Assembly (NCBI GenBank): GCA_965202585.1
Contig: OZ241829.1
Span: 73,594,001 to 73,658,000, forward strand
DNA: 64,000 nucleotides
Source of the DNA: Thalia democratica
Lineage: Eukaryota
Direction of reading: 5' to 3'
Position numbers and translations under genes: made by a program. The notes below the pieces were generated by a model. That model made no database searches. It saw nothing but the letters and a program-made list of their open reading frames with translations, and was not told where the DNA came from. This document shows, one piece after another, positions 4,045 to 62,725 of this stretch (its first letter is position 1; each line of letters starts with the position of its first letter).

Positions 4045-4150
4045 TGACGTAATAGTTGGTGTTCAAACGAATTGTGCTTAGTTATGACGTCACATTTTAT
4101 TTGATAAGGTCACTATCGGTGTGACGTCATTCATTACTCTTTTCACTGAC
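4045..4150. promoter_or_regulatory. Triple CRE-like cluster
   Basis: TGACGTAA at 4045; TGACGTCA at 4085 and 4122. Paralogous to 5445-5550. Confidence 0.55.
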
Positions 4151-5444
4151 CTGCAACACAAAACGACTAAAAGTTTGTTTGCTAAGTCACAAAAATTTGA
4201 AAGAGTTTTAAAGCTGTAAGTCCAATTAAGTGGGGTAAAGTTTTAGTCGCTGGTAATAGTGATATATGTATATAATAAGAAACTAACTTCAATTTAACTA
4301 AATTGGAATAGACATAATATCGCAACATCTCTTTCAGATAAAGATAATAATAAAATATTAACTTAGCAATAATACAATATTGTTTCACCACTAAAACTCC
4401 AAAGGCTGCAAAGGATCGTGAGTCAATATTTTAAAATCAATAATAAAAAAACAACAATTTGCAAAAACTTTTTATATAAAATATAAAGTAACAAATATAG
4501 CTTTTAAAAAGGTGTAGCATGTTCGTTATAAATAAACTTTTTTTGTACATCTTTTTACATACTTACAATTATATTACCTGTTTAAATAATTAAACAAGTT
4601 AAAACATTACTTGCAGCACTTTTAATTGTTACCAGCGTCTAAACGTGTTTAACCATTTAATTCTGTTTTAGTATAATAGTAATATAGAGGTAAGTCTTTT
4701 AAAAACTTGTAATACATTATTTAGTAGACCTTTGATTATTATTTATATTACACTTGGTGTTCTCTAAAAAAAAATATTTTTAAACTGCTAATATTTTAAT
4801 TCTAAAACATTGAAAGTTTATACTTACTTTACAAGTAAATTTAAAAGAACAAATAGGGTAACGACCAGCAAAGTGACTGGCCTTAAGAACAGAAAAAAAA
4901 AGCAAAGTAGTAGAAGTGAGTTGGCGTAGCGAAGCAACGAAGACAAAACTAAAATATTTATTTTCTAATAAACCAATACATTTAAATTAATAATGTGTAG
5001 TTTAAAATTAACGAGTAGTGTAAATTGTTATGTCTAACTGTGATTAAAGTAGTGCCATAACTAACTTTTAAAACTAATTTTAACTAACAATAAAATAGTT
5101 TTAATAAATAAAGTTACAACGTAAGTTGAAGTGTTTATTATAGAATAATACCAGACTGTCTACTACAAAACTATATCATTTGTAGTAAGACACCCAGGAT
5201 AAATACTATAAAACATAAAACTTTACTGTAACTCAGTTATTTTTAATATCAAACTTACATCTAGATAATTACAAGTATGTTATATTACATGTTAACAGTA
5301 AAATAACACACTAAAAAATCATGCATAATTACTCGTACATCAAACAAATAACTAATATGATGGCAATCAGCATAATGACGTGGCCTTAATAGTACGTAAA
5401 ACATTTATTCAACCGAAAACTAAAAAAGTTATTAACTTTCGATT

Positions 5445-5550
5445 TGACGTAGAAGTTGATGTAAAAGAAAAAGACTTAGTTATGACGTCACTGTTTTCTT
5501 AATTAGCTCATCATCGTAGTGACGTCATTGAGTACTCTTCACTGACCGTT
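5445..5550. promoter_or_regulatory. Triple CRE-like cluster (paralog of 4045-4150)
   Basis: TGACGTAG at 5445; TGACGTCA at 5483 and 5520. Shares the downstream ACTCTT(T)CACTGACC. Confidence 0.55.
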
Positions 5551-8500
5551 GACATAAAAGTACTCAAAGTTTGTTTGGTTTCAGTTTTTTATATAAAGAA
5601 GTAAAAAAAGGACAAAATTAGCCTTCCATGCAAAAGTAACTTTGTGCAGAATCCACGTTTAAAATAAAACAATTTAAAACTTATATACAACCTAAAAATT
5701 TGACATTGCATTTTATATTTTGAGCCTGAATAAACAAGTAAAGGTAAATTAATATAAAACAAAATGTATTTTAGTGTTTCAGTTCTACAAAAACATAATT
5801 TATCTAAATAAATAAATATTGTAACCGTAAAATATCAAAATCAGTATTAAGAGCTGTTAACAGATCAGATACTTTTTTTGAAAACGTTTTAAGAATTATA
5901 TCCTTATTTTAACAATTAATATAAAAATAGTAATTTACTGGATCCGGTTTTTTTTTTAAGTTAAGATCTGGCTGAGTCTGGATATTTTTACAAATAAAAT
6001 ATAGCCGTATCCGGATCGATAAATTTAAAATTTTCAGAATTTTACAGCTATCTAGACTTCTTAGTTTTAACTTTTCATTTAAAACCTATATAAGATTGTA
6101 GGAATATTTTTTTTCGACGGGTCATATTTACTTAAAAAGCTTTTAACGGACCAAACATGTAAACAAAACTTTTTTCGCAAAATTGTATTGAAATAATCAT
6201 TTGTAAGAGCTAAAACATAGAAAGATAAAACTTACAGCACATTTCAAAAACGTATTTTTTTTAGAAAAACATAGTGTGAGTTGCTATGCACAATTTTTTT
6301 CTAAAGATAAAAACTTATCCCTCCAAATGTTTCTGCTTCACGAGCTAGGTCCAGCCAACGGGCCGATTTAGCCTATAATCATGTTTTAGTTAGAAATTTA
6401 AGTGAAGATAGATAGAAAATTTCTTCAGTTTAATCTCCTTTTTGCATATTAAGGGTGGTCAACATACGGCATTCAAGTAAAATCCCGCTTGCGACTATAT
6501 TTCTAAACATAATAACTTGTACTAAAAAATGGTAAACTAACTTGTAAACAATAGTACTGGCCCAGCTTTAATTTTGAACTAGAAACCATTAATCGCGAAA
6601 AATGTTTAAAACTAGTTGAAAAAGTTTCTTCATACCTTGTCAATTCAATAAAAACCTTAATCAAAACACCGTTATAGTTAATAACGCATGTCTGTCTTAT
6701 TTACAGTATTTAGCGATTTACCTTAAATTAATTTTTTTTATTAAACTTATAAGGATAACTTTATCTTATAATCAGCTTTAATTACTATAAATACCTGAAA
6801 GTTATCTTCGTTGTTTAAAAGGTAACCTGTCAAATTTTCAAATTTAAAGAGGTTAAACCATAGCAATTATGAGTCCTGTCACAAAAATCATTAAACAGAT
6901 TAAAATTAAATTAATTTGTTTCTAAATTAAAACCCTAAATATGGTATTTAATTTGGATACTTATCATTATTTAAGAAAATCATACTTACTTGAAACAAGA
7001 TAAAGTAATAACTAGTAGCAGTAAAACATAAAACAATATGAATTCGTTTTAACTTGTTATTACGAATCTGCAGCAGTCTTTTATTGTAACCAAACACCAC
7101 AGACTGGTATGTAAAAATAAAGCAAAAAGTTAAAACATATTCAAGTTACGCAGCATTGAATGGAAAAATAACCAAAATAATCAGACGAGCAAATAACACT
7201 AATCAAAAACACTGCCTGTAAGCTTAACTGAAACGACAATTAGTAACATAGTACTAATGGTAAGAACTTTAAAAACATTTTAATAAATAAGAGTGACGAC
7301 AAAGATCGTAAACACTTCAACAGAAATGACAACAAAGATGACGAAAATAACCAAAGTTTCAGACCATCTGTAGTTGCGGTTGCAGACGGTTTTTAGTTTT
7401 ATTTTTGTTTTATTTAACAATTGCGTGAGTCAATTACAAAAACTCAAAGCTAGAACTTATCCAACTAAAACCAAAAGTACTGTTTGAGAAGTACTCTAGT
7501 TTTGGTAAGTGAATAAAGGTAAGTACTTTTGCTATTTGTATTAAAATACTTCTTTAAAAACTCGTGGGCACGTCCCTAACAAATAAAGAATAATAAAGTA
7601 ACAGAAAAAATCAAATAACCAATAGCTAACCAGATTATATATAACGGCGTTGTGTTTGGCTTCACACCGTTGTGTTTGGCTTCTTCTGATTCTTATAAAT
7701 CACCTAAAAAACAGTAAGATGATAGTAAAACGCTAAGTAAAGTTTTACAAAAATTTCTTAAAATTTTATGACAAAAATATACAATTAAACTTTTAATAGA
7801 AACTACAAAAAAACAAGTAGCTTAACAAATATTTAAAAATGTTTTTCTTATTTTCTATCGAGCACATAACAATTTTAAGCATAAACTACAACTAAAAAAG
7901 TAGTTTTTAGATTTTACTGTTGCCATTTATACAAATGTGCAATAGATTAAGTATAAACAATATAGATATAAACTGTTCATTTAATTGGTAATGCTCATTA
8001 AAATACAAACAAAACTATCAGAAACAGTAAAAATTGAATTTTGAACACAACAAAAAGCAGTTACAATTACAAATGTAAAGAAATAAAAAATCAATCAAAG
8101 AACTTTATAATGGTTAAGAATGATACACTACATCTTTAAAAATCTGAAAAAAATGTAAAATAAACGAAAAAAAAGTCAAACTAAAAACATCGCTCATATT
8201 CACAGTTGACAGTTAAGAATAAGAATAAAAAATTGAGGATAAAACTGACCGCAAAATCGAAAAATTATTGTTACGTCATAAACCATTTTTTCAGTTTTGA
8301 GGTAAGTTTATTATATATAATAAACTTGTTTTATAATATAAAAGATCCAACTTGTTGTTTTTAGTTACTGAACAAGTTGGGAAAACAATTAAAATAGACC
8401 TTTTTAACAACAAACAGTATAGAATCTGCCTTTAATTTTTGTTTAAAAACAAATATTTTACTACAGTTTTGGTTTTGAAAAGTGTTTCAACGTTTATAGT

Positions 8501-11919: not shown

Positions 11920-12101
11920 AAGATGGCGACCGTGTTTTAGCGTAAACTAGTTTGAGTTATTCAGCTTCAAACTGCTGCTTCAGCTTTGAAAGAAAACGCT
12001 GTTTGTGACGTCACAAGCGACTTTTTCTTCCAAGCAGGCGAAGCGCTGAAGCTTCAGAGTTGATAAAGACATTTAAACCGCGCAGTGCGGTTGTAAAAAA
12101 T
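11920..12101 (+). promoter_or_regulatory. YY1-like/CRE/hairpin cassette (first half)
   Basis: AAGATGGCG 11920, TGACGTCA 12006, hairpin AACCGC-gcagt-GCGGTT 12076-12092, then GTAAAAAAT. Confidence 0.55.
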
Positions 12102-14764
12102 CTTGAAGGGAGTTAGAACGCATGGGTTAGAATACTGTAGTTGTTGCTAGAAAACTACAGTATGCTAGTTGCTTAGAATATTTGTTCCATAGAAAACAAC
12201 AAAAAAAAGTGTACAAAACGTTTAAGATTTCAAGTTTAAGCTTTAAATAACGCTGCTTTAGGTAAAGCTATGGTTAAGTTTATACCAAACCAAAATTAAA
12301 GTAAAAAAATTTAAGTTAATTTTGAAATTTACTCTGTTAGCTTAAAAAAAAGTTTTGTAGTTATGTAATTAAAAAAAAGATACATTCAAAATACAACTGA
12401 CAGTCGTTAAACACTTTGCAAATTTGATTTTTCTTAGTTTTTTTAGTTTGATATTTAAAACTATCCTGATGTTGGAACTGCAAGCTTAATCTCTGTCAAA
12501 TGCATCTTAAACATACACAAAGTTTTAATACATTTTTTCTTAGTTTAGGTTAATGCTGCTGCCGCATGAATTCTAGTACCATCTTAATTAAAACAATAGA
12601 TTTTCAACATTGTAAATAGAAAAATGTATTGAATGTAATTAACAAATCGAAAAGAAACGATAAAACAAAAAACAAAAACAAAAAGGGAGCAGACGCGCAA
12701 GCCACGCGAGCAGGTGAAGCTACAAGCGAGGAAACAAACACAGTTTACTGAAAACAAGAAAACACATATAGACAAAACGACCGCTGCTCGAGACAAAAGT
12801 TTTAAATTAGAGGATTATTTTTAATGTGTGTTTTTTTTTTGCACCCCATGGCAAAAAAAAACCGCGCGTCGCTACTGGATTGTAATATTTTGTGTTTTCG
12901 GTAGTAACGTCATATTTTCTCAACAGATCCACTTGAATTTTCACACCATAGACCTCATAGTTGTTTTGAAGATATATACCATTTTTCACGACCGTTAAGA
13001 AAGTAGTTTCGCCATAAACTTGTTTAAAATTATGCCGAGTGCGGCTCTAACTGTTTTCTTAAAAATGAATTTTAGTTTTAACATTTTTATGAGCTTAATC
13101 ACCGATTCAGCTATATTAGCTGTATCCGACATTAAAAAAATATCGAATATAAGATCAAAATTTTAAATGAACAAACTTAGTTGGAAAACTATTGACATTT
13201 ACAAATCCGAGAATACATAATTTGGCTCTATTTTTCGTCAGACCTACATATACCTACTATAAGAGCTACATAACTATTTTATGGCTTGGAGTTTTATAGT
13301 AAAATCCGTATATTAAAAGCATAAAAAAGTAAAAAAAAAACTAAGCAGGAAAGTAAACGACAATTATAAACTTGAGAAGGAATATTTTAGTTTTATTTAT
13401 TTCTTATTTCATCACTTTACAAATATTTTATAGATTAGGCTATTATAATAAATTTTATATCAGTTTAAAGCTCAATACCTCAGTTTATGTATAATTTTTT
13501 AGTTTTAGTTTTAGATAGTAAAGCTTTAACAGCGTTTCTCTAAAGCAAAATATATAACTATATCTTTTTGTAAATTTTTGTCTTTTATTTTGATAGCTTT
13601 GACCTCTACTTGAACAATATAAACGTAAGTTAAAAAAATTAGTAAATTTTTTTTTTATTTGAAAAGTTCTTCCACTTATACACTTACGTTTAGCGATAAA
13701 TATTTTTAAACGATTTTGATGTAACATTTATACCAATCACTTTAAATAATCCAAATTTTTAATTGTAAATGTTACGGCTTTTCAACATATGTATGATATG
13801 TGGTTTTGTTGATTATACAAGAAAATATATTAACAATGTTACAGTTATTGTAAAATTGCTAAACTTAATTAAGTTACTTTTTAAAAGGCAATTATACACT
13901 AAATTTGTTTTTTTTTCTAAAAACTGCATTATTTAGTAGTAAAATAATAAATTTTAACTCACCAGAACGTTCATAGCTTCGTTGTTGAATTCAAACTGAC
14001 GTGATTACTTCTTTTGCGGCTGACTAGGTTGTAAGAAAATATTTATTTGTAATTTTATTTTACATAAGCTAGTTTAATGCTGTTTTTTTATTTAAACTAT
14101 TCTGATAGTAATTAAACTTTTAGTAGGTAATTTTCTACAGTTGTTAAACCATATGTATATGACACAATTGCTTTAAACACTTATTCTACTTTAATTAATA
14201 ATTTAAACCTGATAAATAATACTTTCATTTAAATAAAAACTTAGGTTATTGTGTTTAAACAATACAAACCTTATTTTATTGAAATAATGTAATAAATTTA
14301 TTTAGAAATTTTATTTATTCATTTTTTAAAGCATATACTTTCTGTAAAAAATTTTTCTAGTCCATGGTTTTAAACAGCCTTAACACTATAAAGTTTAAAG
14401 CTTCAATTAATAACTTAAGCTTCTTCTAACATTTTGGTTTTAATTATTGCCAATAAGAATGCAAAATAAAAAATACAACATGAGTTCAGCAAAAAAAGTT
14501 TTAATCCTAAAATAAGATGGCAGCTGTGATTAAGTGCGTAAATAAGTTTAAATTTTTTCAATCTGAAACCACCTTTAGTTTTTTTTAAGTTTTCAAATAT
14601 CTAATCTTAAGTTAATAAAAGTCTTGTTAATGTTTTACAGTTTCAATCAGCCACTTAAGCTTCTCCTAGTAGTAAATTGCAATTTAAAAAAATTATTTTC
14701 TGCATTAAAAAAATGCCATTAAAATTCCAAAGTAAATCAATAAAATTTTGTGTCAATAACGTAA

Positions 14765-15114
14765 AAGATGGCGACTATGTTTAAGCGTAAAATTAACTTT
14801 AAAATTTCAAGCTGCTGTTTCAGCTTTCAATGGAAAGTGTTTAGTGACTTCACAGTGCTTTAGCTTGAAGCGGTTATCATACGTCACAAGCAACTTGTAC
14901 CGCCAAGCTTGAAACTGAACGAGTTCTGTAAAGCCGTACGAGACGACTCTAAAAATTAAAAATTGATGATTTAGAGGAAAAGTTTATTAGTGTAAATACA
15001 TCGCCAAGCAGCTTCAAACTGTTTCATAATGTGTATGGGTGCTGTCGTGTTTCTACTGTCGTGACGTCACATTTTACGGCTTTTTTTTATGACGCGCGTT
15101 TGTAAATTTGAGAG
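14765..15114 (+). promoter_or_regulatory. Full CRE/hairpin cassette
   Basis: AAGATGGCG 14765, TGACTTCA 14845, TACGTCA 14880, hairpin 14932-14948, TGACGTCA 15062, TGACGC 15090, TTGAGAG 15108. Confidence 0.55.
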
Positions 15115-15974
15115 AACTTTTCATGGACTTCCGGTTTCGTAGTTAACTTTTTAAATGAAGTAGAAGATGGCAGAAGAACAAAAAAAATCGCCCTCAGCTA
15201 AATACACGTTTCTGAAACAGGTTGAACAAGTGATTCAATACAAGACGGAGGTTAATAAAACTTGATTTTTTTTTTTAAATTAAGACATTTACTGAGTTTC
15301 ATCGCTAAACGAACACATAAAATGTAATTAATATCCAACTAAATTTAAGAGAATTAACAAAAAACTGTTCACAAAGTATTCTTGCGCATCTGCCACAACA
15401 TTTAAGTGGTTTTTCCTGTTGTTTTGTTAAAGCAAATAAGTATAGTTTTACTTTATTTTTTAAAAAATATCCATTTTAAAAGCAAAAATATGTAACTTAA
15501 ACAAACATGACATGTTCACCTTAAAAAACCAAGTTGATAAAATAAAAAAAACAACGACAACATTTTATTTTGTTACTAAACTTCTTATAGGACTAATAAT
15601 TTATAAATTTTATGACTAAGAAGCGAGTAGTGTGTAAAAAAATAAAGTACTTTAAGTTTTTTTTTGGTTATGACGTCATGATTACAGTATGGATAGAATA
15701 TATTTTGATAACTATAGTATATGTAGTTGGTAAAAGCAAGTATCTGAAACATCATATAATTTAAGTGAGTCGTTGCAAATGAAAGCTAGGTTGAACTACT
15801 TCTGTTTTTAGGTGTAATGTCATAGTTAAGGAGTAGATTTATTTGTATTTGTTTCACCTATATTACTCTGAAGTAATTTTAAAGACATATACGAGTTTTA
15901 ATAACAATAAAGCAAGTAGTTTTAACACAAAATTATTTGAATTTATGTCGAGTGCAGCTCCAAATGTTCAGCAT

Positions 15975-16193
15975 TAACCGCCGAAGCTTGAAGCTGAACG
16001 AGTTTGGTAAAGCCGTACGAGACGAATCTAAAAATTAAAAATTAATTATTTAGAGGAAAAGTTTATTAGTGTAAATACATCGTCCAGCAGCTTCAAACTG
16101 TTTCATAATGTTAACGGGAGCTGTCGTGTTTCTACTGTCGTGACGTCACGTTTTACGGCTTGTTTTTATGACGCGCGTTTGTAAATTTGAGAG
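15975..16193 (+). promoter_or_regulatory. Duplicated 3' part of the 14.8-kb cassette
   Basis: Close copy of about 14900-15150. Degenerate hairpin 16011-16027, TGACGTCA 16141, TGACGC 16169, TTGAGAG 16187. Confidence 0.5.
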
Positions 16194-16831
16194 AATTTTC
16201 TCTGGACCACAGGTTTCGTAGTTAACTTTTCAATTTTAATTTAATTTCAGCTTCAGTTGTAAATGGTTTGCATGTAAATATAAACTGATTTATGACTTTT
16301 AAGGAGAAATGTACCAAAAAAAAGCTTATTAAAATTATTTTTGGGGTGCACCGATTTTGTTTTTTGCAGCTTGGTGTAAACAGAACTTGATTAGCTTGAC
16401 GACCACTGGTATATACTATAAGTAGTTAATAAAAGCAAGTATACGAAACATCATAAAAATCAAGCGAGTCGCTGCAAATGAAAGCTATGTCGAACTGTTT
16501 CGGTTTTTAGATGTGACATAATAATAATCGAATTAATTAATTTTAAACTGATTCACTTTTATTACTCTTAAGTAATTTCAAAGTCATATACAAGATTTCA
16601 TAACAATGAAGCAAGTAGTTTTAAAACAAACTTATTTAAACTTATGTCTAGTGCAGCTCCAAATGTTTTCTTTAATACGGTATCAACAAAAACATCGGCG
16701 AAAGTGTGCAGAGCACATGCCTGGTTTTTCATTTGTTGTGAGACAAGCTAAAGTTAAACAAAGGGTTGATCATGGCAATTCGATCATCAGATCACAAGTA
16801 TTTCGTTTGTGACTGACTGGTGAGTCTAATC

Positions 16832-21589: not shown

Positions 21590-21845
21590 AACCTGCCTGC
21601 GACCTCACAAGCTGATTTTAGGAGGTGAAGATTCAGACATTGAAAGTTTTGAGAACATTTTAGTCGTGTTCGAGACGACTTTGAAATTGTGCATAGACTT
21701 CAGTAATTGCACTTACTAGGCCTGATAATTTGAACCAAATTTAATTTTATTTGAGTGAAATTGTGAGTTTATTTTAAGTTGAGAGTATTTTACATCATTA
21801 AACATAATTGACAAAGTTAGTAAAGCGTAAAAACTTTAGAGAGTG
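21590..21845 (+). promoter_or_regulatory. Cassette variant with AGTCGT-gttcgag-ACGACT hairpin
   Basis: Hairpin 21662-21680, minus-strand GTAAGT at 21711-21716, degenerate second module GCGTAAAAACTTTAGAGAG near 21826. Confidence 0.5.
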
Positions 21846-24016: not shown

Positions 24017-24097
24017 GAAATTAATTAGCGATCTTCCTTGTTGATAAAAATAAAACAATAAATATTAAAGAAAGTTGCATTAGTATAGAGCTTAAGA

Positions 24098-24291
24098 AAG
24101 ATGGCGACTTTGTCTAAGCGTAAATGTGTGATATTAAACTTTGGAAGCGAAGCCTCGTTTAGTGACGTCACACAACTTCAGCTTAAAGAAGTTTTGTTGC
24201 GTCACAAACAGCTTTTACTTCGACTGCCTAAGCGAAGCTTGAGACTGAATCAGCAAGTTTCTTAAAGCCGTACAAGACGACTGTAAAAATT
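24098..24291 (+). promoter_or_regulatory. YY1-like/CRE/hairpin cassette (first half)
   Basis: AAGATGGCG 24098, TGACGTCA 24163, TGCGTCA 24198, hairpin 24266-24282, then GTAAAAATT. Confidence 0.55.
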
Positions 24292-25365
24292 AGGATTCAA
24301 GTGTGAAGAATGACCAGTAGCAGCTAATTTTGTACAGTTTTTTATTTATTATTTTAATAACTTTGAATTCTACTTGTGTTATATAAACGTGAGTTTAAAT
24401 AAACGTAGTATAAACTTTTTTTTATTTAGAAAAAGTTACTCAACTTTAACAATAAGTACAGTGATAAATATTTTTTACCGACCTTGATGTAGTATTTGTA
24501 CAAATTTCTTTAAATTCTACACGGTAAAACTTTTCAACACATGTATAATATGTGATATTGTTAATTATTATTATTAGAGTTTATTATGCCTTGATAGACT
24601 CGGCCATTAAAACCTGAGCCGCTTAAAAATTAAAGAAGAAAAAAATATTAACAACGCTTTAGTTATTTTAAAACTATTAAATTTAGTTAAGTAGCCTTTT
24701 TAATGGCAATTATAGACTAAATTTGTTTTTTTTTTGAAAAAAATTGCAATATTTATAACTAACCAAAACGTTCATAGCTTTGTTGTTAAATCCGAACTGA
24801 CGTGACCACTTCGTTTGCGACTGACTAAGCTGTAAAAAATATATTTTAATAATTTAATTTTAAAATCTGTTTTAATAATTCTGTTTAATGTATTTTAGAT
24901 TTAAACAGATGTACCGAAGAAAAATTATTCTGATAGTAATTAAACAAATGGTAGGTAATTTTTCACAGTTGTTGAACCATATGTATATGAATAAAATTGC
25001 ATAAAACACTTCTTCTATTGTAATTTATAATTTAAATCGGTTTAAACAATACTTATATCGAAATAAAAACTCAAGTAACGGTGTTTAAACATTAAGAACC
25101 ATATTTTATTGAAATATCGTAGAAAATTTTATTGAAAAACTTGATTTGAAAAATAATTAAAATTTTTTTTTTTTGTTATAAAAGTTCAATGCTTTAAAGA
25201 TTATAAACTTGATAAATATTCAATTTCGAGTTTTCAAAAGTTTACTTGATATTTGCCAGTTTTTATTAACAACTTAAGCTTTTTTTATAGTATCATTTAA
25301 CATTCAATTAATACCAACAATAATAAAAAAACAGATCAATACTTAAACGTAGTTCAAGCGTAACA

Positions 25366-25696
25366 AAGATGGCGACTGTGTTTTAGCGTAAACTAATTTG
25401 TGTTTTTCAGCTTCATACTGCTGCTTCAGCTTTGAAAGCAAAAGCCGTTTGTGACGTCACAAACCGCTTTTGCCTCCAAGCATTCGAAGCGCTGAACCTT
25501 CAGAGTTGATTAAGACATTTAAACCGCACAATGCGGTTGTAAAAATTAAATAGTGCTTACAAACGCAGATTGTTCAAGACAAAGAGCATGCGGTGCAGTT
25601 TGGATCTGATTAGTATTGTAAAAGCGGGCGCTCGTGTGTTATGAACTGTGACGTCACGATTAACTAGTTTTAGTAAATGATGTAAGAATATGAGAA
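25366..25696 (+). promoter_or_regulatory. Full CRE/hairpin cassette
   Basis: AAGATGGCG 25366, TGACGTCA 25452, hairpin AACCGC-acaat-GCGGTT 25522-25538, TGACGTCA 25649, TGAGAA 25691. Confidence 0.55.
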
Positions 25697-25730
25697 AGGT
25701 TTTACTGTGTTCGATTATCGGTTTGCTTTC

Positions 25731-26851
25731 TTGTGCACGAGCGTCACTATGCACGGCACTCTTTTGCACGAAGGGTCATTTTTGCACCGAGGGTCACTTT
25801 TGCACACAGAGTCACTTGTGGACGGCGTCAACTCTGAACAGCGACATTTTTTACAATGACATTTTTTCACGTAAGCATTGTTCACAACGATACTTGTGCA
25901 GAACGTCACATTTATACGGTGATTTTTTTGCAAAGCGAAATTTTGGCACGATGACTTTACTGCTCTTTTTATTTTCACGCAATTTTAGAAAATAAACTTT
26001 CCACACAACTAAAAAATAACCATTAAGTAAAAATCTGAAACTTCTTACACTTCATAAATTAACTAAACTCTTTTTCTTTAGTTTAACATTTGTTAAACGT
26101 AAAGTTAATTAAAGCATTTGTTAAACAACTATTAAAATTAATTTTAAGATCAAGAAAATATAAGTAAAAAATCGGTCTCAAAATTCGTGTTTTAAAGTCC
26201 AACTAACTTATATTTATATTTCTGTTTAAAACTAACGAAATTCAGTTTATTTTTTTTAAGGCATTCAAAATGGTTTTAATTTAATAGTAAAAAAACTGTA
26301 CTTATCTATTATATTTTAATTAAGATTATAAATATGAATTAAATGAATCGTAGTACGTTATTACATTGGTCTATGTATAATTTTAAATAAAAACTTTCCA
26401 TTAAAAACCATCACATTTTATTCATTTAAAAAAACTTGCGTTTAAAAGCGAATTTTATTTAAGTTGCCAAAATAGAAGTATATTTAATCTATTTTAGTTT
26501 TTATTAAAGAAAATAAAGATTAGAAGCGTGCAAAAGTGAAGCTCCGTTCAAAGTTGACCTATTGAATAAAATTTTTGCAGTTCGTAAGTATATCCGTGAA
26601 AATATAACGCTGTGCAAAAGATACGCTTTGCAAAAATATCGCAAACGTAACGTCGTGCCAAGTTTAGACGTGTAAAAATTTTGTCGTGCAAAAATGACCC
26701 TGTGTGCAAAAGAGTCGCCGTGCAAAAATGTCCTTACGTGCCAAAGTGATTCCGTGCGAAAGTGACGCCGTGCAAAAGTGTTCCCTCGTGCTAAATAAAC
26801 GTTCGTGCAAAAGAGTCGCCTTGCAAAAGTGTCCCCTCGTGCAAAAGTGAC
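25731..26851. mobile_element. Foldback-type element with modular inverted arms
   Basis: The left arm is built of ~16-18-bp GTCACTTTTGCACG modules and the right arm (about 26640-26851) of the reverse-complement CGTGCAAAAGTGAC modules. AT-rich spacer; TSD not identified. Confidence 0.6.
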
Positions 26852-27586: not shown

Positions 27587-27729
27587 TGACGTCAGAAGCA
27601 ACACAAAAATTTCTTATGACGTCATAATTCACTTTAGCTTCACAAGCCGAATCTCAAAGCGAAATCACAAACAGGATTTGAAGTCAGAGACACAACCATT
27701 TCAAATTATTTTAAATGATTGTAAAAATT
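27587..27729 (+). promoter_or_regulatory. Paired CRE + hairpin cassette at unit start
   Basis: TGACGTCA 27587 and 27617, hairpin AATTATT-tta-AATGATT 27704-27720, then GTAAAAATT. Confidence 0.55.
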
Positions 27730-28734: not shown

Positions 28735-28790
28735 GACTCTCTAACGAAATCTCTAACAAGTGACGTCATAAACCATTTGTGACGTCACAC
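28735..28790 (-). promoter_or_regulatory. Short-spaced CRE pair (11-nt spacer)
   Basis: TGACGTCA 28761 and 28780. On the minus strand followed by TTAGAG..TTAGAGAG. Confidence 0.5.
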
Positions 28791-36874: not shown

Positions 36875-37160
36875 TGACGTCACTAGTAATAAAGTTTATT
36901 TGACGTCACGATTCTCTTTTGGCTTCACCAGCCAAAGCTTGAAGCGAAATCACCGATTGGCTTCAAAGTCAAGATGAGTTAGTTTAAAGTCATGTTGAAA
37001 ATGATTGCAAAATCGACAACAAAAGATTGCCACGGAGCTACGACTATACTAATATAAGACTTACTTTGAAGCCAATTTGTGATGTTAAAACGAGCGAATG
37101 ATGTTTTCAATTCATGACGTCATCAAAAAATCCATTTTTATGACGAATTAATGTGAGAAC
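36875..37160 (+). promoter_or_regulatory. Full CRE/hairpin cassette at unit start
   Basis: TGACGTCA 36875 and 36901, hairpin AGTCAT-gttgaaa-ATGATT 36988-37006, TGACGTCA 37115, TGACG 37141, TGAGAA. Confidence 0.55.
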
Positions 37161-38079: not shown

Positions 38080-38135
38080 CTCTCTAACACAACTTCTAAC
38101 ATATGACGTCATAAACCATTTGTGACGTCACACAC
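38080..38135 (-). promoter_or_regulatory. Short-spaced CRE pair (11-nt spacer)
   Basis: TGACGTCA 38104 and 38123. Confidence 0.5.
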
Positions 38136-39738
38136 AAACCTTCAAATAGGCTTGTGAGAAACTCACAAAACTGATACAACCTGAACCAAGTACAATTTAA
38201 GACACACACCAAAGAATATTAACATGCAAAATTTTAACATAAAATGATACAATATGAATGATACTATTATGAAGTGCATAAATGATATAAAATTAAATAA
38301 GCCTGCTCTCCGAAAATTATCTTGCCACAGCCGCAACCAATCAACGAAAAAAAAATTTTGCAATGCGGAATACGTAAGATCCTAAAACAAACTTCAAAAC
38401 AGTTTACAATAATTTAATCACAAAAAATTTTCAGAACCAAACTACTTGGTCGTTTACATCAAAATAACAATAGGCAACTAAAGACAGTATTTTACTGAAG
38501 TGAAAGCATCGTCAAGACACAAAAAATGAACGTTTGAAATAAACAAAACTTCAGCATTCAACTTAAAAGACTTACTATAAAATCTGAAGTTTGTTGTGAA
38601 TAGTCGAGAGAACTTTTGGTAGGAACGGAATACCAGTCAGGAAAATTTGATAAACGGAATCAACAGGTGTTTAACAGCAAATCAGAGCAGTTTAAGGAAC
38701 GATGTAATCATATTCATTAATAATGATTTTTGAATTTCACCACTCACCAGAAATGTAAAACTCATCACTATGAAAGTAATATTACATAATTTTCTCACAT
38801 CCAAGTATCGAAAACTGTGATAGGTTTTATACGTTATTTATAAAAATATACTACATTTGACATGCTGATGAACCACCGCTTTATGACTAGCTAAATTAGA
38901 ATTACACGAGTAAAGTTGAAAATATTTTTCCGTGATTAAGTAGAAACCCTAAAGGTTGTTTTAACTAACAGAATAACAAACATTTTACTGTTAAGAAAAA
39001 TGTTAGAAAAGTTACTAGAAACTATTTAAATTATCAAGGTAGAGGTTGCTTTAAAAAATGAAAAACAAAAGTTAAGCAGAAAGATGTTGAATCGGAGAAC
39101 TAAACAAAAAAATAACAATAAAAAGAACTTGTAGAACGTAGTAGCTTAGACGGGCACTAATGCACTGAGCGACAATTTTTGATGGAATTTTTTATAGGTG
39201 TCAATTTTGCACCGGTGTCAACATTTTACAATTTTCAACTTTGTATTGAGTCACTTTTTACCAATTTTAATTTTACAAGACGTCACTTTTTTAGGGCTAC
39301 CGATTTCGCATGGAGTCACTTTTGCACGGGTGACACTTTTTTCATGTAGTCACTTTTGTAAGGCGTCATATTTTTACGGTTGTCATTTTGCATTAAGCAT
39401 CTTGTCTAGAAATTCTAATTAAAAATTTTTTATGAAATTTAAGAAAGCAAAATTTTCATGGTGCAAAAGTAACTACTTTACAAAACTGACTACACGTGCA
39501 AAATTAACCCTTCGCTGTTTATGTAACTTCGAAGAGGGCTTAAATAAAAGTAGCTTGGGACTCCTAATGTAGATCACACTTATTCAAATGTTTCCAAATT
39601 CAATTGTTTAAATTGAACTTAGTATAAAAATCATAAGTAGTAGTTTTTAATGAGCTGAATTAATCAAAGACAAAGTTGTGCAACAAAATGTTAGTTCTGG
39701 TTACTTACACTATATGTATTGTAAATATGAAAACTTAC

Positions 39739-40789: not shown

Positions 40790-41030
40790 ACCTATTAACC
40801 TCACAAGATGACGTCATCTGAAGAAGATTCCAAGAATGAAAATATTTTAGTCGTGTTCGAGACGACTTTGAAAATGAGCGTAGATTTGTTAGAATTGGTC
40901 AATGCACTTACTGGTGCTGATAGTTTGTACATATTTTCATTTTAGACAAGAGTGCTTGTTAGTTTTTTAATATTACGTCATTAATAATGAGAGATAAAGT
41001 TAGGGAAGCGTTAAAACTTGATAAAGCTGT
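40790..41030 (+). promoter_or_regulatory. Cassette variant with AGTCGT-gttcgag-ACGACT hairpin
   Basis: TGACGTCA 40809, hairpin 40849-40867, minus-strand GTAAGT near 40905. Confidence 0.5.
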
Positions 41031-43565: not shown

Positions 43566-44178
43566 CTGTCCAAATGTTAAAATATAAGTGTTACTTATTC
43601 TGTTAATGTAGATTTGAGGTTTATATCTGTAGAGCTCTGTTTGTTACAAAGATTAGTCTAGAATTTGAAGCTATAATTGTTTGTCATTTTAGATCGTCAC
43701 ATTAAAAAGTCACTTTTTATATTATATTATAAAATAGCTGGTTTAAATATTCTAAAAAGTAATATATTATTGTAAGCTCAGCTGAAGTCTGGAGGAATAA
43801 AGTCAACCTTAAAAATATATATAACAACGACAGTTTCAATAAAGCAGTAATTTGCAAATTAATGCTATTATATTCTTACAAGCTTGTTTCGTTCGGACGT
43901 TTTCTGACAAACATATTAACAAACTAAAAATAACAGCTTATCGAACAAAAAACGAAAATGCTCAAAAAATTTTTATTTAACTACCTAAGTGTACGAAAAC
44001 CTCTCGGTCATTGAGTCGTACACGAATTAAGTGTTTTGAACTGTTAACAAGTATTTATAGTCATGTAAGATGACTTTAAAAATTCATCAGTTAGAAGTTA
44101 TTAAAAGAAAGGTTGAAGTGTTATTACAATTTAAATTTATTTATTTTTTGAAAACGCTATATTGTTTAAGTTAGTTAG

Positions 44179-44225
44179 TGACGTCATGATATACTATACT
44201 TGATTATGACGTTAAATTTTGAGAG
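44179..44225 (+). promoter_or_regulatory. Second cassette module alone (CRE - TGACG - TTGAGAG)
   Basis: TGACGTCA 44179, TGACGTTA 44207, TTGAGAG 44219. Confidence 0.5.
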
Positions 44226-44974
44226 TTGCTTTTTTCTTTTTTTTTACGGTTTGTAAATTTCAATACAATTTATAGTATTTTGAAACATTCTCTACAGATC
44301 GGTTGTTATAAAAGTGTTCATAATGTGCAAATAAGTTAAGAATCATTTTGCTTTTTAATGTTCGAACGAATATTGTACTTTTTGTATGTTAGGCAGATTA
44401 CTTTTTTAATTCTTCACAGTTAGCTCATTTGTTATAAAAAGGCAGTGAACGATCTCAAATAGCTTAGTATCAAATAATAATAGTTTCAGATCGGACTCAG
44501 CGTTTTGAGCATAATTGACATACTTCGTGTGATTTTTACAGAACATTATTTAACAAGGTCATACAAGTGGCCAAATATTGTGGCTGCTCTGCTTGTTAGT
44601 AAATGAAGCAACAAATATGCCTGTATTATCAAATATCGAATTTAAAAACAAATATTGTAAGTAGCTCTCTCATTGTTTACAACTACAAGCAACAGCAACA
44701 ATTTACTTATTAACAGCAAGTAATCTCGTCAGTCAAAAGATACGTACCAACTTTCAAACCTCCAATTAACACTCGCGTAAATTAACACAAAAAGTTTATT
44801 AGCCTCCTACTACCCCTTTTTGATAGAAATAAATCAATCAGATCCTTTTTCTTTAGTGTATAACTATTAGTAGGCGAATGATCCAAGCACTGTATATGTC
44901 ATTGAAAGTAGCTATTTTCTTATCTAAAACAATGAATACAATAAAAAATCCACATGTAGATTTGTTACAACGAT

Positions 44975-45700
44975 TTTAATCGCTGATTACACCGAGAGTT
45001 GATCGGGGAGTCGGAAATGAGATGTGAACATAGAATCACAAAGTTACTTACTTAGATGCAATTCGCATTTTTAACTGATCCTCCTTTGTCAAAAAAAGAT
45101 TTGCATGTTATAAGTGGATAATTTTAATTAAAGAACATACTTGATGAAGATAAAAGTAAACTGGTGTTTTTTTATATACACTTCAAGCGAAACCAACTAA
45201 AATATAGGATATCTGTCCAATTTTTACAGAATTAAGAAGATTTTTGGAGTGATAGATAGATTCGAGTGACACAAAAGATTAAACACTAGAGAAGAAGCGA
45301 GATGAGTAAAAAAGACATAAAACAGCACTCGAAGTTACAACGCTTTCAATCGCTGATTACACCGAGAGTTGGTCGGGGAATCGGAAACGAGATTTAGATA
45401 TAGAATCACAAAGTGCCAAGTTACTAGTTATTAGATGCAGTTCGCCTTTTTAACTGATCCATCTTAGTCAAAAGCAGATTTGGATTTTATTAGTGGGTTG
45501 TTTCAATTAAAAGAACAACGTAGATGAAGATAAAAGTTAATTGGAGTTTGTTTAAACACTCTTAACTCGAAATAAACTAAAATGGAAATATCAGTCAACC
45601 TTTTACGGGATTCAGCAGAGATTTGGAGGTATAAAAAGATTCGTGTGACGCAAATGACTAAACACGAGATAAGAAGCGAGATGAGTGAAAAAGACATAAA
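44975..45700. repeat. Local direct duplication of ~360 bp
   Basis: AATCGCTGATTACACCGAGAGTTG occurs near 44978 and 45347. U4 (59290-59630) has a single copy. Confidence 0.8.
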
Positions 45701-46119
45701 GAAGCATTCGAAGCAGGACTCTCGAAGGAGCAGCCTAAAAATCCGGTTGATCATATTGAAACACCAAAAATATTGCTAAACAATCTTCATTTATACCCCG
45801 ATTGTCAACCGTGACACATGTTTAATGAATATATAATTAAGTGGTAACAATCAAAAACTCCCGTTTCTTCACAGTGTGTTAAGGTTAGGCGTAAAGTATT
45901 GAGAACTGCCCGACCAACAAACTACAACGGCATCGGAGTGAATTAGTTAAAAAAGAAAAACATAAAGTTCATGCATACGAAGAATTTCAACATGAAAATA
46001 TAAACAAGCTTGCTCATGCAAACAACTAGCTCGAAAAAGCACCACGTAACATACCAACGGGAGCACAAAGTCAACATAAGGTTGTTACATTAAAACTTTC
46101 AACACAGATATTATAGTTT

Positions 46120-46160
46120 TACTAACAGAGGACGTCATTAGCCTTTATGACGTCACTGCT
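46120..46160 (-). promoter_or_regulatory. Short-spaced CRE pair (10-nt spacer)
   Basis: GGACGTCA 46130, TGACGTCA 46148. Paralog at 60081/60099. Confidence 0.45.
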
Positions 46161-46304
46161 TCAAACAGAACTGTAAACACAGTGTAATAATAAGCTTTTT
46201 GTTTGCGCTTAAGTGAACTACATGGTAACTCTTAAAATTGTTACGACCTGAGCTATTGACACTCAAACACAAGCATTAATGAATATGAGTATGAAAAATA
46301 TCAA

Positions 46305-48619: not shown

Positions 48620-48967
48620 AAGATGGCGGCAATACTTGAGCACAGGAAGTTTGCGATTTTTTAACTTAAAACTGCTGCTTCACAAAACTTAAGTGACGTC
48701 ACAAAACTTCAGCTGAAAAAAAAACTGTTTTTTACGTCACAAGCGGCTTTTACCTCAAGAACCGAAGCGTTAACGTTTCACAGAAAGCATGTTGGGCCGC
48801 GCTCGGCAGGCCTTAAAATTAATCCCTTAGAAGAAGACAACTTGAGCTTAATATGCGTGCTGCCACTTTGAACGTTACTCATACTATGAAGGCGTTCAAT
48901 CGTTGGTGACGTCACTTTAAATTCAATCTGATATATGACGCAAATTCAATCTGAAAATGTGAGAGAG
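48620..48967 (+). promoter_or_regulatory. Full CRE/hairpin cassette
   Basis: AAGATGGCG 48620, TGACGTCA 48694, TACGTCA 48733, hairpin 48794-48813, TGACGTCA 48907, TGACGC 48936, GTGAGAGAG 48959. Confidence 0.6.
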
Positions 48968-49492: not shown

Positions 49493-49706
49493 GTCACAGA
49501 GTGACACTTTAGCACGGAGTGACACTTAAGCGCGGAGTGACACTTTGGCACGGAGTAACACTTTAGCGCAGATAGACCTTTTAACAAGGGTCGTAATTTA
49601 AGAACGAAACAACACTAAACCACGGAGTGACACTTTAACACGGAGTGGCACTCTGGCACGGTGTGAAACTTTGGCTCAAATTGACATTTTAGCTCGGTGT
49701 CACTCC
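49493..49706. repeat. 18-bp module array (GGAGTGACACTTTRGCAC), foldback-family remnant
   Basis: Four tandem modules at about 49499-49570, further modules at 49620-49690, and an inverted terminal GTGTCACTCC. Confidence 0.75.
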
Positions 49707-54254: not shown

Positions 54255-54305
54255 TCTAACGCAATATCTAACATATGACGTCATAAACCGTTTGTGATGT
54301 CACAC
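54255..54305 (-). promoter_or_regulatory. Short-spaced CRE pair (11-nt spacer)
   Basis: TGACGTCA 54276, TGATGTCA 54295. Confidence 0.45.
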
Positions 54306-55814
54306 ACGAACCTTCAAACAGGCTTGTGAGAAACTCATAAAACTGTAACAACCTGAACCAAGAACAATTAAAGACACACATCAAAGAATATTAACATGCA
54401 AAGTTTAAAAATAAAATGATACAATATGAAAGATACTATTATTGAGTGCATGAATATAAAAATATGAATGAGCCTGCTCACAGAAAAAATATCTTGCCTG
54501 AGCCGCAACCTATTAACGGTAATCAAAGTCAGCATACATTTGTTGACTTTACGGAATACGTAAGATCCTAAAACAATCTTCAAAACAGTTTACAATAATT
54601 TGACCACAAAAAAATTTTAGAATCAAACTATTTGGTCCACTACATAGAAATAACGACATGCAACTAAAGACAGTATGTTAGTGAAGTGAAAGAAACAAAA
54701 AATGAACGTTCAAAATAAACATAAATCCAAAGGTTAACATTCCAAAGGTTAATAAAACCTAAAAATTGTTGTGAATAGTCGAGAGAACGTGGTCGTTTTG
54801 ATGCGAACAGGAAATACCGAAAACACGAAAATTTGATAAATGGTGTTTAACAGCAAATCTGAGCAGTTTAAGGAACGTTGTATCATATTTATGTAATGCT
54901 TTTTGAATTACATCACTTAACGGAAATGTAAAACTCATCACTATAAAACTAATGATACATAATTATTTGTCATCCAAGTATCAAAAACTGTGATAAGTTT
55001 TATACATTGTTTATTAAAATATACTACAATTGACATGCTGATGAACCACTGCTTTATGACTAGCTAAATCAGAATTACACAAGTAAAATTGAAAATATTT
55101 TTCCGTGATGAACTAGAAACCCTAAAGGTTGTCTTAACTAACAGAACAACCAATATTTTACCGTTAGGAAAAATGTAGAATCACGGTAGAAAAAGTTCTA
55201 GAAACTCCTAGGATACTAAAATATACTGAATTTATCACGGTAGAGGTTGTTTTACACAATGAAAACAAAACATAAACACAAAGATATTGGGCCGGAGAAC
55301 TAAATAAAATGATAACTGTAAAACGAGGTACTAAGATGATATACAAATGCACTGAGCGACAATTTTTGCATGGATTTCTCTTTTTTAGGTTTCAATTTTG
55401 CACGGGTGTCAATTTTTACATGAAGTCACTTTTGTACGACGTCACATTTTTACGGTTGTCATTTTGCAATAAGCATCTTGTCTAGAAGTTCTTATTAAAA
55501 ACTTTTTATAAAATTTTAGTAAGCAAAATTTACATGGTGCAAAAGTAAGAACTTTACAAAACTGACTACACGTGCAAAATTGACCCTTCGTTGTTTAAGT
55601 ATCTTCAAAGAGGGCGTAAATAGAAGTAGCTTAGGACTCCTTATATGGATCACAGTTATACAAAAGTCCTTAAATCATTTTTTCGAATTTAATTCAGGTT
55701 ACAACATCATAAGTAGTAGTTTTTAATGAGCTTACTTAATCAAAGACAAAGTTGTGCAACAAAAAGTTAGATCTAGTTACTTACACTATATGTATTGTAG
55801 ATATGAAAACTTAC

Positions 55815-60069: not shown

Positions 60070-60110
60070 AAACTGACAGATGACGTCATTAGCAGTTACG
60101 ACGTCACAGC
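60070..60110 (-). promoter_or_regulatory. Short-spaced CRE pair (10-nt spacer)
   Basis: TGACGTCA 60081, CGACGTCA 60099. Confidence 0.45.
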
Positions 60111-60254
60111 TTCAAACAGAATTAAGAACTTAGTGTAGTAACAAGCTTTTTATTTGCGCTTAAGTGATCTACATGGTAACTCACAAAATTGTTACGACCT
60201 GAGCTATTGAAATTCAAACACAAACATTAATGAATATGATTATGAAAAATATCA

Positions 60255-61020: not shown

Positions 61021-61428
61021 AAAAACTAATCAAAGTACAATCTAAAGGAAATTTGTTACTCAATTTAGATAATAATTTGATTATAATCAGTGAGAGCGGA
61101 TTTCTAAAAAAGAGTGTTTATCAACTTAAGTATAGACAACCCTGCCCTATTGAACAATGTTTTGCATCGACTGACAATTAGATACAAAACGTAGTGCGCA
61201 CAGTAGCTTTTTGAAAAACTATAGGGGGGACGATTGCTGTTTAAATTTCTTAAAAGCGATTATTACGAAATTTAGCTTTAAAAAGCTGAAAAAGATCAAA
61301 GCTACACAAATGTACTCAACTTCATTTGTTTAAGACCATTTAGTATAAAACAATTTAAGTAGTAATTCTCAGTGAGCTTAATTAATGAGATATGTCAGCT
61401 TACATGTTTTATAAACATGAAAGCTTAC

Positions 61429-61524
61429 TTGGAGTGTTTGCATCATTCCATCAACTGCATCTTTCAACATTAGTGTCAGCTTGAAAGAATGTTGATTCCT
61501 ACCACAAAAACAAGCTGCCATCCT
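61429..61524 (-). other. Exon-like segment, family E paralog (acceptor mutated to CAA)
   Basis: Minus strand ORF MAACFCGRNQHSFKLTLMLKDAVDGMMQTLQ ends at ACTCCAA|GTAAGC. Confidence 0.35.
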
Positions 61525-62382
61525 TTGTTAAATTATTGAAAAATTAACATTTAATATATTTATTTTAATATAGATAACAGCTTTTCTTTAATTTTTAAAT
61601 CAATTAAATTAGTTTAATTCAAATTACTGGCTTCTACCACTAACGTATACCTATTTTATCTTAATACATTAATTTGAAACTAGAGATTTTCTGTTAATTA
61701 ATATGCAGTACATTTCAATAACACCACACGTCACCACTGCTTACAACATATTAATACAAATTAAAAATATGTTACTTAAAAACTTTGTGTGTTTTTGAAA
61801 AGTAACTTAATTATCAATACGTAACACAAAAGAAATCGTATTTAAAAGTTCTGATTTAAAAATCGTAGAATTCATTTTAACAGTATGTGTAAGTCTAACA
61901 AAGTATAGATAATTTAAAAAAACTCAATATTGCTTAAAATAAAACTTAATACTTTCGTTGTATTCTATATTTAACGATAAAATTGTAATTAAGTACTACT
62001 TTAGTTATAGTTTGACTAAGCAGTTTCAGTAAAATATGTAATATTTTAAATAAAAAACGTATTTCTCCGTATTAGTTTAGCTACTTTACAATAGTTGTAA
62101 AAACCAATGACATCATGTTTAAAAATGTATTTAAAATATTAGCTAATAATGTCAAAATTCTAACTTAAATAATTATATTGAAAATTTCAATGTTGCATTT
62201 ATAGATAGTTATAAAAATATTATTTTCAATTGTTGTTGCTAAACATACAAAGCAGATAAAACATTGAGAAAATTGTCTGACGATACAAAAACATTTATCC
62301 CGTTATTTCTCTATAGTTTTTGAGTTATAAGTAAACTAAAAAAATCTCAAGAAATACTTATTTCAAAAAGCCGCGCATAAAA

Positions 62383-62725
62383 TAGATGGCGGCAACACTT
62401 GAACGCAGGAAGTTTGCGATTTATTAACTTAAAACTGCTGCTTCACAAAGCTTAAGTGACGTCACAAAACTTGAGCATTAAAAAACTATTTGTTACGTCA
62501 CGATCGGCTTTTACCTCAAGAACAGACGCGTTTAAGTTTCACAGAAAGCATGTTGGGCCGCGCTCGGCAGGCCTTAAAATATTATGAATTCAACAAAGAC
62601 AGCAATATGATAATTAAGCGTGCTGCCACTTTGAACGTTACTCATACTGTGAAGGCGTTCAATCGCTGATGACGTCACTAAAAAGTCAATTTGATATATG
62701 ACGCAAGGAAAAAATGTGAGAGAAT
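62383..62725 (+). promoter_or_regulatory. Full CRE/hairpin cassette (paralog of 48620-48967)
   Basis: TAGATGGCG 62383, TGACGTCA 62457, TACGTCA 62494, hairpin 62555-62574, TGACGTCA 62670, TGACGC near 62700, GTGAGAG. Confidence 0.6.

Follow-up and report, generated by a model that had tools for sequence, protein, structure and literature searches.

The Locus and Its Cassettes

The stretch of DNA considered here (the window, 64,000 nucleotides with a G+C content of 22-31%, from the 801.8-Mb Thalia democratica assembly; contig 5 (C5):73,594,001-73,658,000) carries 33 perfect copies of the octamer TGACGTCA, the cAMP-response element (CRE), between positions 4085 and 62677, which fall into 15 clusters of paralogs when grouped by similarity of their flanks. 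These octamers would be the upstream promoter elements of non-coding cassettes which, tandemly duplicated and co-oriented, appear to make up a contig 5 locus of ~1.2 Mb that surrounds the window. The best-defined type of cassette accounts for 7 of the 33 window CREs and comprises at least nine diverged families in the 264 kb read. Judged from the sequence, there is about an even chance that these cassettes are mini-genes of the small nuclear RNA (snRNA) type, read from the minus strand. Each would be a small-RNA gene under a U1-like RNA polymerase II (Pol II) promoter of the snRNA type, in which a distal element (CTCTCA, an A+T-rich word, CGTCA) and a spacer of ~20 nt precede the CRE, while a CGYTTTYA box resembling the proximal sequence element (PSE) follows at +23, counted from the CRE. 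Some families would also have TTGGGT..CAGG at ~+40, and the predicted start lies at ~+66. The product of 52-70 nt would consist of a 5' arm of ~30 nt that is free to vary, an AAUUUUUR Sm-like tract, and a terminal hairpin of 5-7 bp. The seven units in the window are as follows.

14926-15115, minus strand: unit F3a; distal TCTCTCA and CGTCA up to 15115, CRE at 15062-15069, predicted start at ~14995, doubled Sm-like AAUUUUUAAUUUUUAG, hairpin at 14932-14948, predicted RNA of ~70 nt.
16005-16194, minus strand: unit F3c, a paralog of F3a; CRE at 16141-16148, hairpin at 16011-16027 with one stem mismatch.
25516-25697, minus strand: unit F1; CRE at 25649-25656, CGCTTTTAC box 22-30 nt later, predicted start at ~25582, AAUUUUUAC, hairpin at 25522-25538, predicted RNA of ~67 nt.
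36982-37160, minus strand: unit F8; CRE at 37115-37122, CGTTTTAAC at +23, TTGGCTTCAAAGTAAGT box at ~+40, GAUUUUGCA, hairpin at 36988-37006, predicted RNA of ~67 nt.
44053-44226, minus strand: unit F5; CRE at 44179-44186, CGTTTTCAA at +23, AAUUUUUAA, hairpin at 44059-44075, predicted RNA of ~60 nt.
48789-48966, minus strand: unit F2a; CRE at 48907-48914, conserved promoter core at 48857-48914, variable 5' arm at 48821-48856, AAUUUUAAG, hairpin at 48795-48812, predicted RNA of ~52 nt; at least 17 paralogs in the locus.
62550-62723, minus strand: unit F2b, paralogous to F2a but with another variable arm; CRE at 62670-62677, hairpin at 62556-62573.

Abundance of the CRE Octamer

An earlier note on this DNA had reported 32 perfect TGACGTCA sites where ~0.3 were expected, an excess of about 100-fold. 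The recount gave 33; 100 dinucleotide-preserving shuffles average 0.38 and do not exceed 2, so that the window stands 87-fold above its composition. The genome as a whole, with 56,755 copies of the octamer versus 9,487 of the reversed word, has 4.5 per 64 kb, and relative to this density the enrichment of the window is only ~7-fold. The figure of 100-fold thus holds approximately against composition and is overstated otherwise, because it ignores the abundance of the motif throughout the genome; the locus may serve as a caution that a composition-based motif excess needs comparison with the genome's own background. Pairs of CREs spaced 10-40 nt are likewise frequent genome-wide (2,039, versus 14 in the control). 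The 200 kb at C5:73.19-73.39 Mb hold 51 CREs and include one stretch of ~60 kb with none. As for the number of independent sites, clustering of the flanks leaves 15, in place of the 'roughly 19' given previously.

Two Modules Revisited

The octamers had been described as belonging to two modules, A and B, read on the plus strand as parts of one promoter. Both modules exist as described, the module A CREs lying at 12006, 24163, 25452, 27587/27617, 36875/36901, 48694 and 62457 and the module B CREs at 15062, 16141, 25649, 37115, 44179, 48907 and 62670, with a spacing of 197-214 nt from A to B. When seven diverged families are aligned, the landmarks keep an identical order, with randomised sequence in between. 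On the minus strand this order runs from CTCTCA through an A+T-rich word, CGTCA, ~20 nt, the CRE, a CG-containing box and a variable stretch to AATTTTTA(C/A/G), the hairpin, TTWAA, a GCTTC block, and finally AAAGCNGTTTG-TGACG, which is the module A CRE. It had been remarked that only the motifs stay recognisable between distant cassettes, and indeed only the boxes align between families; the degenerate grammar is common to families that are otherwise unalignable. In a genome-wide scan the strict module B pattern occurs 27 times (none in the control), and it is clustered, with 20 of the 27 matches in C5:73.20-73.71 Mb on one strand. Since the strict pattern is found mostly in one locus, the exact grammar is largely a matter of paralogy. 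Another small tandem locus, on contig 9 (C9:45.42-45.48 Mb), has a grammar similar to that of module B; there, four copies of TCTCTCAATCGTGACGTCAC...TGATGACGTCA lie ~21 kb apart.

The pairing of the modules has to be revised. On the minus strand, the hairpin that had been assigned to module A begins at a fixed 94-113 nt after the module B CRE, whereas its distance from the module A CRE varies between 27 and 95 nt (as read from the sequences). It follows from the fixed distance to B and the variable distance to A that B and the hairpin go together as one gene, in which module B would be the promoter and the 'module A hairpin' the 3' end, so that A and B would no longer be two modules of one promoter. 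The module A CREs, for their part, together with the motif AAGATGGCGRC, may constitute a second promoter-like element. This motif is plus-oriented at all six of its sites; on the minus strand the module A CRE comes 50-95 nt past the hairpin and the motif, which reads GCCATCTT there, a further 54-76 nt on, and the two could form a second minus-strand promoter with a YY1-type initiator. The module A elements are listed without strand.

11920-12013: module A; YY1/initiator-like AAGATGGCGAC at 11920-11930, CRE at 12006.
24098-24206: module A; AAGATGGCGAC, CRE at 24163, half site at ~24200.
25366-25459: module A; AAGATGGCGAC, CRE at 25452.
27587-27624: module A CRE pair, 22 nt apart.
36875-36908: module A CRE pair, 18 nt apart.
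48620-48738: module A; AAGATGGCGGC, first CRE (CRE1) at 48694, half site TACGTCAC.
62383-62500: module A, paralog of 48620-48738.

Promoter Polarity and the U1 Genes

The CRE is palindromic, and the direction of a promoter built around it must therefore be read from the surroundings; the U1 genes of this genome were taken as the reference. In 37 U1 genes a perfect CRE lies 65-67 nt upstream of the start (0 in the control). It is followed by CTAACGATTC, TAGCGTTTTT or CATCGTTTCAAG, with CG at +21 to +23 and a CG(A/T)TTC-type box that spans +21-30, and then by a second box, TTGGGTAGCAGCTG / TTGGTTGGGTAGCAGCTG, at +38 to +56; ahead of the CRE there is a distal CTCTCT, in some cases together with a half CRE at a distance of 20 nt. 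The octamer is identical in the cassettes, and the distal CTCTC / half-CRE element of the U1 promoters is related to theirs. A PSE-like box (CG[CT]?TTT[TC]?[AC]A) placed exactly at +23 occurs on the minus side of the CRE at five sites, from families F1, F5 and F8, and on the plus side of the module B CREs at none, the background rate being 3.3e-4 per nt. In family F7 the box is found at +24 after a degenerate CRE (as read from the sequences). A further box (TTGGGT..CAGG) is shared by F7, F8 and F8b; the F8b version, TTGGGTTCAGGGTTA, agrees with a U1 box in 14 of 17 positions, no more than 2 nt from its offset, and thereby scores above all 150 control flanks. Module B thus fits the U1 promoter layout on the minus strand, contrary to the plus-strand reading proposed before, with the predicted start of the cassettes itself being taken over from U1.

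The combination is not confined to these genes. GACGTCA-N22-CGYTTY is found 223 times genome-wide, versus 26 in the control, from which it can be concluded that CRE-plus-box is a recurrent promoter type in this genome; many of the matches are contig 1 families with a TATA box after the box. Along these lines, many units at C1:7-15 Mb and C4:63.7-63.8 Mb combine a CRE, a ACCCGCAACAAAGCGCTTCAC-type box and TTTATA ~15 nt later, a U6-like layout (RNA polymerase III, type 3) scattered over megabases. A genome search for a CRE upstream of the U2, U4 and U6 5' ends gave 0 matches, a blank that means little. The U1 genes themselves, at least 42 copies in several tandem clusters on contigs 4-10, start with AAACUUACCUG and have A at position 2. 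The U1 consensus has U at this position; unusual splice-site usage has reportedly been found in tunicates, on which the A at position 2 may bear.

On the other hand, module B on the plus strand reads CRE-N20-TGACG-TAAAAAT-TGAGAGA, that is, a classical CRE upstream of a TATA-like box. The cassettes would then be CRE-plus-TATA Pol II promoters, with the order CRE, half CRE, TAAAAAT, TGAGAGA and a T-rich start region, from which unannotated transcripts, long non-coding or spliced, would arise, or which would supply a downstream gene with alternative first exons. We consider this unlikely. It would accommodate a TATA-like TGTAAAAAT after the hairpin, the ~85% identity that paralogs maintain for 700 nt to the right of module B, the GTAAGT that follows the 4085-type cluster on the plus strand, and the plus orientation of the YY1-like motif at 6/6 sites. 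The +23 PSE-like box and the U1-like second box, however, stand on the minus side of the module B CRE, no conserved open reading frame (ORF) or consistent splice donor follows TGAGAGA, and both the fixed CRE-hairpin distance of 94-113 nt and the hypervariable stretch between conserved blocks are left unexplained.

Both polarities would be in use if A were a promoter on the plus strand and B one on the minus strand, the two converging on a segment of ~100 nt that is read both ways and gives rise to double-stranded small-RNA precursors. The module A and B CREs do face each other over 190-215 nt, in five families the module A CRE has a PSE-like CAARCNGCTTTTAC immediately behind it on the plus strand, and the top match of a hidden Markov model (HMM) of U1 promoters is a module A CRE read on the plus strand. 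Nevertheless, this arrangement appears very improbable: the module A box has an offset of +1-14, compared with +21-30 in U1, and the module A CRE1 is poorly conserved.

The Predicted RNA

What the minus-strand mini-genes would encode is delimited by a U-rich tract and a hairpin. The combination of an [AG]AUUUU.. tract and a perfect hairpin directly behind it, 94-104 nt after the CRE, is present on the minus side of 8 CREs and on the plus side of 0; the seven window units (five families) have the beginning of the hairpin at +94 to +113. If the start is placed at ~+66 as in U1, the predicted RNAs of 52-70 nt would have a single-stranded, pyrimidine-rich arm of ~30 nt, followed by the U-tract as a putative Sm-binding site and by the terminal hairpin. 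Among 13 distinct hairpins compensatory changes are found in 4 of 6 pairs, and 93.6% of the cells are paired, as compared with 81% in shuffles and 30-40% with slid partners; the mirror reading on the plus strand gives 89.7%. AAAC(N0-2)TT-like words follow many of the hairpins and were also noted, by eye, in 3 of 4 U1 3' flanks.

The clearest trace of an RNA body in the window appears to be that of a different cassette, P2, which is present in four copies.

21656-21717, minus strand: P2 unit; conserved block from CCAGUAAGUGCA to hairpin AGUCGUCUCGAACACGACU.
31345-31414, minus strand: P2 copy 2.
32905-32974, minus strand: P2 copy 3; CRE at 32849, beyond its 3' end.
40843-40983, minus strand: P2 copy 4; CRE variant TGACGTAA (40973-40983) ~97 nt before the U-rich tract.

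The four copies are 64-70% identical overall and contain a block of ~65 nt, from CCAGUAAGUGCA to ACAAUUUCAAAG and the hairpin, that is almost invariant. It begins with CCAGUAAGUGCA, which resembles a 5' splice site perfectly, and ends with ACAAUUUC, equal to 8 nt of the Sm region of this genome's U1, and the hairpin.

Several observations weigh against the interpretation of the cassettes as minus-strand snRNA-type genes. The second U1 box is recognisable in three families only, and the HMM derived from four U1 promoters failed to rank the cassettes, its matches on both strands being dominated by the CRE alone. Wobble pairs favour the minus strand only mildly (5 versus 2 cells, from few independent events); the P4 hairpin (see below) needs two G.U pairs on the minus strand, and the wobbles in F9 and P1 favour the plus strand. 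The Sm-like tract, AAUUUUU(A/G/C), usually comes without the G that stands after the U run in the canonical Sm site, RAU4-6GR, and the word AATTTTTAC recurs in the distal promoter, so that the U-tract could be a TATA-like box acting at the DNA level for plus-strand transcription. In the genome as a whole, the frequency of CRE-N88-106-AATTTTTA is only 1.27 times that at the control distance, the folding z-scores of the whole RNAs are unremarkable, and no 3' box was identified behind the hairpins. Finally, the families are paralogs of each other, and their shared offsets are thus partly inherited rather than independently maintained.

Conservation Within One Cassette Family

The cassette at 48.6 kb has 16 paralogs that could be compared, with a pairwise identity of 87.5%, any 8-mer being intact on average in 9.6 of the 16. 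The module B CRE is intact in 15 of them, the half CRE in 15-16, the GAACGCCTTCA box in all 16 and the CpG-rich hairpin in 14-16. The module A CRE1 at 48694 has survived in 5 of 16, and the module A half site TACGTCAC in 13. The earlier argument that CpG-containing motifs decay in such DNA unless maintained can accordingly be upheld for the module B CRE and has to be given up for the module A CRE1. Between the promoter core and the U-tract there are 34 nt with an identity of 0.645, among the four lowest of 1,366 windows (the minimum of 0.634 is at 48821), and the flanks of this variable stretch reach 0.925 and 0.944. A conserved promoter, a variable 5' arm and a conserved 3' handle form the pattern that would be expected of a small RNA with an unconstrained or diversifying arm.

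Motif persistence may also have a trivial origin, namely recent duplication or gene conversion in a mostly dead array, in which a segment with one or a few snRNA-type genes was multiplied through segmental duplication and most of its copies are decaying. Three tract-and-hairpin copies without a CRE promoter agree with this.

12068-12106, minus strand: F1-type Sm-like tract and hairpin, the upstream CRE promoter being replaced; this copy is probably dead.
24258-24296, minus strand: F4 Sm-like tract and hairpin (AGUCGUCUUGUACGGCU, with a U.G pair on the minus strand), without a CRE 100 nt upstream.
27696-27734, minus strand: F9 tract and hairpin lacking a promoter; the wobble pair speaks for the plus strand.

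The decay of the module A CRE1 at a near-neutral rate, mosaic relationships among the paralogs that suggest conversion, and the flat conservation of ~0.85-0.9 across 1.4 kb can be understood in the same way. We nevertheless hold a mostly dead array to be improbable: families that align only at the boxes still retain the CRE, the +23 box, the U-tract and, by way of compensatory changes, the pairing of the hairpin, and conservation inside a single family clearly exceeds the local average at the CRE, promoter core and hairpin and clearly falls short of it in the arm.

Taking up the minus-strand mini-genes again, the array of individually promoted RNA genes that had been envisaged for the locus is plausible as such, with polarity and module pairing changed. 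A more far-reaching proposal is that the locus encodes hundreds of individually promoted guide RNAs of ~60 nt, packaged as small nuclear ribonucleoproteins and built on the U1/U7 gene plan, with diversifying arms of ~30 nt and a constant 3' handle. This is doubtful in our estimation; the targets of such arms could be histone pre-mRNAs, transposons or other transcripts.

Duplication Structure and Neighboring Elements

Self-comparison of the window reveals tandem segmental duplication in units of 8-16 kb with 65-90% identity that share one strand throughout. When the flanks of 83 CREs (window plus 200 kb) are grouped by similarity, 27 clusters result, 15 of them with members in the window, and there are zero links between opposite strands. 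Four cassette types were searched genome-wide, the A+B cassette at 48.6 kb giving 29 matches, the P2 unit 9, the P1 cassette 10 and the triple CRE cluster at 4.0 kb 12. All of these lie on contig 5 at 72.49-73.71 Mb or on the unplaced contig C421. The copies at C5:72.49-72.99 Mb are inverted relative to those at 73.16-73.71 Mb and co-oriented within each arm, which suggests a large inverted duplication around ~73.0-73.15 Mb. The possibility, raised in the earlier note, that the cassettes are internal or long terminal repeat parts of a dispersed transposon was examined and rejected, as all four types are confined to C5:72.5-73.7 Mb (and C421) and co-oriented within each arm.

Apart from P2, three further kinds of CRE cassette in the window look promoter-like.

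28761-28823, no strand assigned: P1 cassette; CRE pair 11 nt apart, hairpin AUGAG-AAA-CUCAU; copies at 38104-38166 and 54276-54338.
46148-46231, minus strand: P4 cassette; AAUUUUG tract, 9-bp hairpin, then CRE pair; copy at 60081-60182.
4046-4129, no strand assigned: triple CRE cluster (TGACGTAA, 4085, 4122); GTAAGT at ~4217 on the plus strand; copy at ~5446-5527.

A 379-bp tandem unit (2.0 copies, 79% identity) is located at 44964-45713 between two cassette types. Arrays of a 16-18-bp repeat (CGTGCAAAAGTGACAC-like) are found at 25761-25817 (plus strand), 26685-26849 and 34585-34685 (both minus strand), 39309-39375, 49495-49697 and 63265-63442. They occur in both orientations, some as inverted pairs ~900 bp apart, and also upstream of contig 6 U1 genes; they may represent the subterminal repeats that a DNA transposon carries. 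At 25.7-26.9 kb, 'ORFs' with lengths of 90-123 aa run through these repeats.

As to other genes, a tRNA scan of the window found none, and a search of the window against Rfam gave zero matches with the gathering scores as threshold, and none of relevance when E up to 5 was allowed. No window ORF exceeds 123 aa; only one reaches 120 aa, inside a tandem repeat, and the shorter ones are noise-like. A protein-coding cluster was considered as well and discarded, since neither a signal-peptide-like ORF starting from the module B TGAGA (25690) nor the ATGGCG ORFs are conserved among paralogs. Exon footprinting over the 16 paralogs showed conservation too flat for exons (~0.85-0.9 over 1.4 kb).

Comparison With Known Systems

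The U1 genes of the same genome share with the cassettes a perfect CRE at a fixed distance from the start (a predicted one in the cassettes), the PSE-like CG(Y)TTTYA 21-23 nt after the CRE, the TTGGGT..CAG box at ~+40 (in three families), the distal CTCTC/half-CRE, and tandem multicopy organisation. They differ in that the predicted cassette RNAs have 52-70 nt without similarity to U1, and the second box is missing in most families. With the cAMP-responsive promoters bound by CREB/ATF proteins the cassettes have in common the full palindromic TGACGTCA, often accompanied by a half site, near a TATA-like box; here, in contrast, the CRE has a fixed position in snRNA-type promoters and 56,755 copies in the genome, and it seems to be an architectural element that acts constitutively, not one for signal response.

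Genes for spliced-leader RNA likewise combine a short RNA, an Sm-like tract, a 3' hairpin and tandem arrays, and in P2 and F1 GUAAG precedes the tract. They were rejected as candidates because there is no consistent donor across families, the arms of F3 and F5 having no GU; in P2, moreover, GUAAGU stands at the predicted 5' end and would leave no exon. A 16-nt leader of the Ciona type is absent from the window, and a CRE 50-80 nt before this leader was found at one site in the genome.

In layout the cassettes appear closest to U7, with which they would share a length of ~60 nt, a pyrimidine-rich 5' arm, a U-rich tract, a 3' hairpin and an snRNA-type promoter. Clustering of U7 genes is known from sea urchins, frogs and zebrafish, and the U7-specific Sm site is RUUUNUCYNG (PMC5054213). 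This site is not matched by the cassette tracts, which read AAUUUUUACA, AAUUUUUAGA or AAUUUUAAGG and have no C at position 7. UCUUU is found within the arm in 4 of 9 families, by inspection and on a strand that is T-rich. The cassettes also differ from U7 by their many diverged 5' arms instead of one. As U7 genes proper they were rejected, the Rfam model having no match in the window (E up to 5) and its best match in the genome, 25.6 bits against a cut-off of 34, lying elsewhere. Very large tandem histone gene arrays, in each of which a unit (6.6-9.9 kb) is repeated dozens of times, are present on contigs 2, 7, 8, 9 and 10.

Should the cassettes be expressed, they would make up a large, so far undescribed family of small nuclear-type RNAs whose 5' arms vary, organised in an array on the megabase scale; if they are not, they still provide a clear example of an amplified snRNA-type gene segment. 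Such promoters would explain part of the genome-wide excess of TGACGTCA, and the grammar CRE, N22, CGYTTTYA, start at ~+66 may be usable to annotate small-RNA genes in this lineage. We know of no arrays of individually promoted mini-genes reusing snRNA promoter logic outside the nematode clusters for PIWI-interacting RNAs (piRNAs).

The type-I piRNA (21U) mini-genes of nematodes form large clusters, and their Ruby promoter motif is derived from the snRNA PSE/SNAPc motif, whose 3' half is GTTTC (PMC6436959; PMC6317315). The earlier likening of the locus to snRNA gene arrays and Ruby-motif loci is an apt one: here, too, there are tiny, individually promoted units that differ in their transcribed parts, and the CGTTTCA box contains GTTTC. 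The cassettes are distinguished by a constant 3' handle and a CRE, and by hundreds of units rather than ~15,000; a Ruby-type motif stands ~40 nt upstream of a 21U/28-nt unit, whereas here the order is CRE, box, then ~66 nt, and the lineage differs. The likeness is conceptual only, and the cassettes do not appear to be members of that class. If, however, the guide RNA proposal were true, the locus would parallel, in the chordate lineage, what happened in nematodes when snRNA promoters were co-opted for the piRNA mini-genes.

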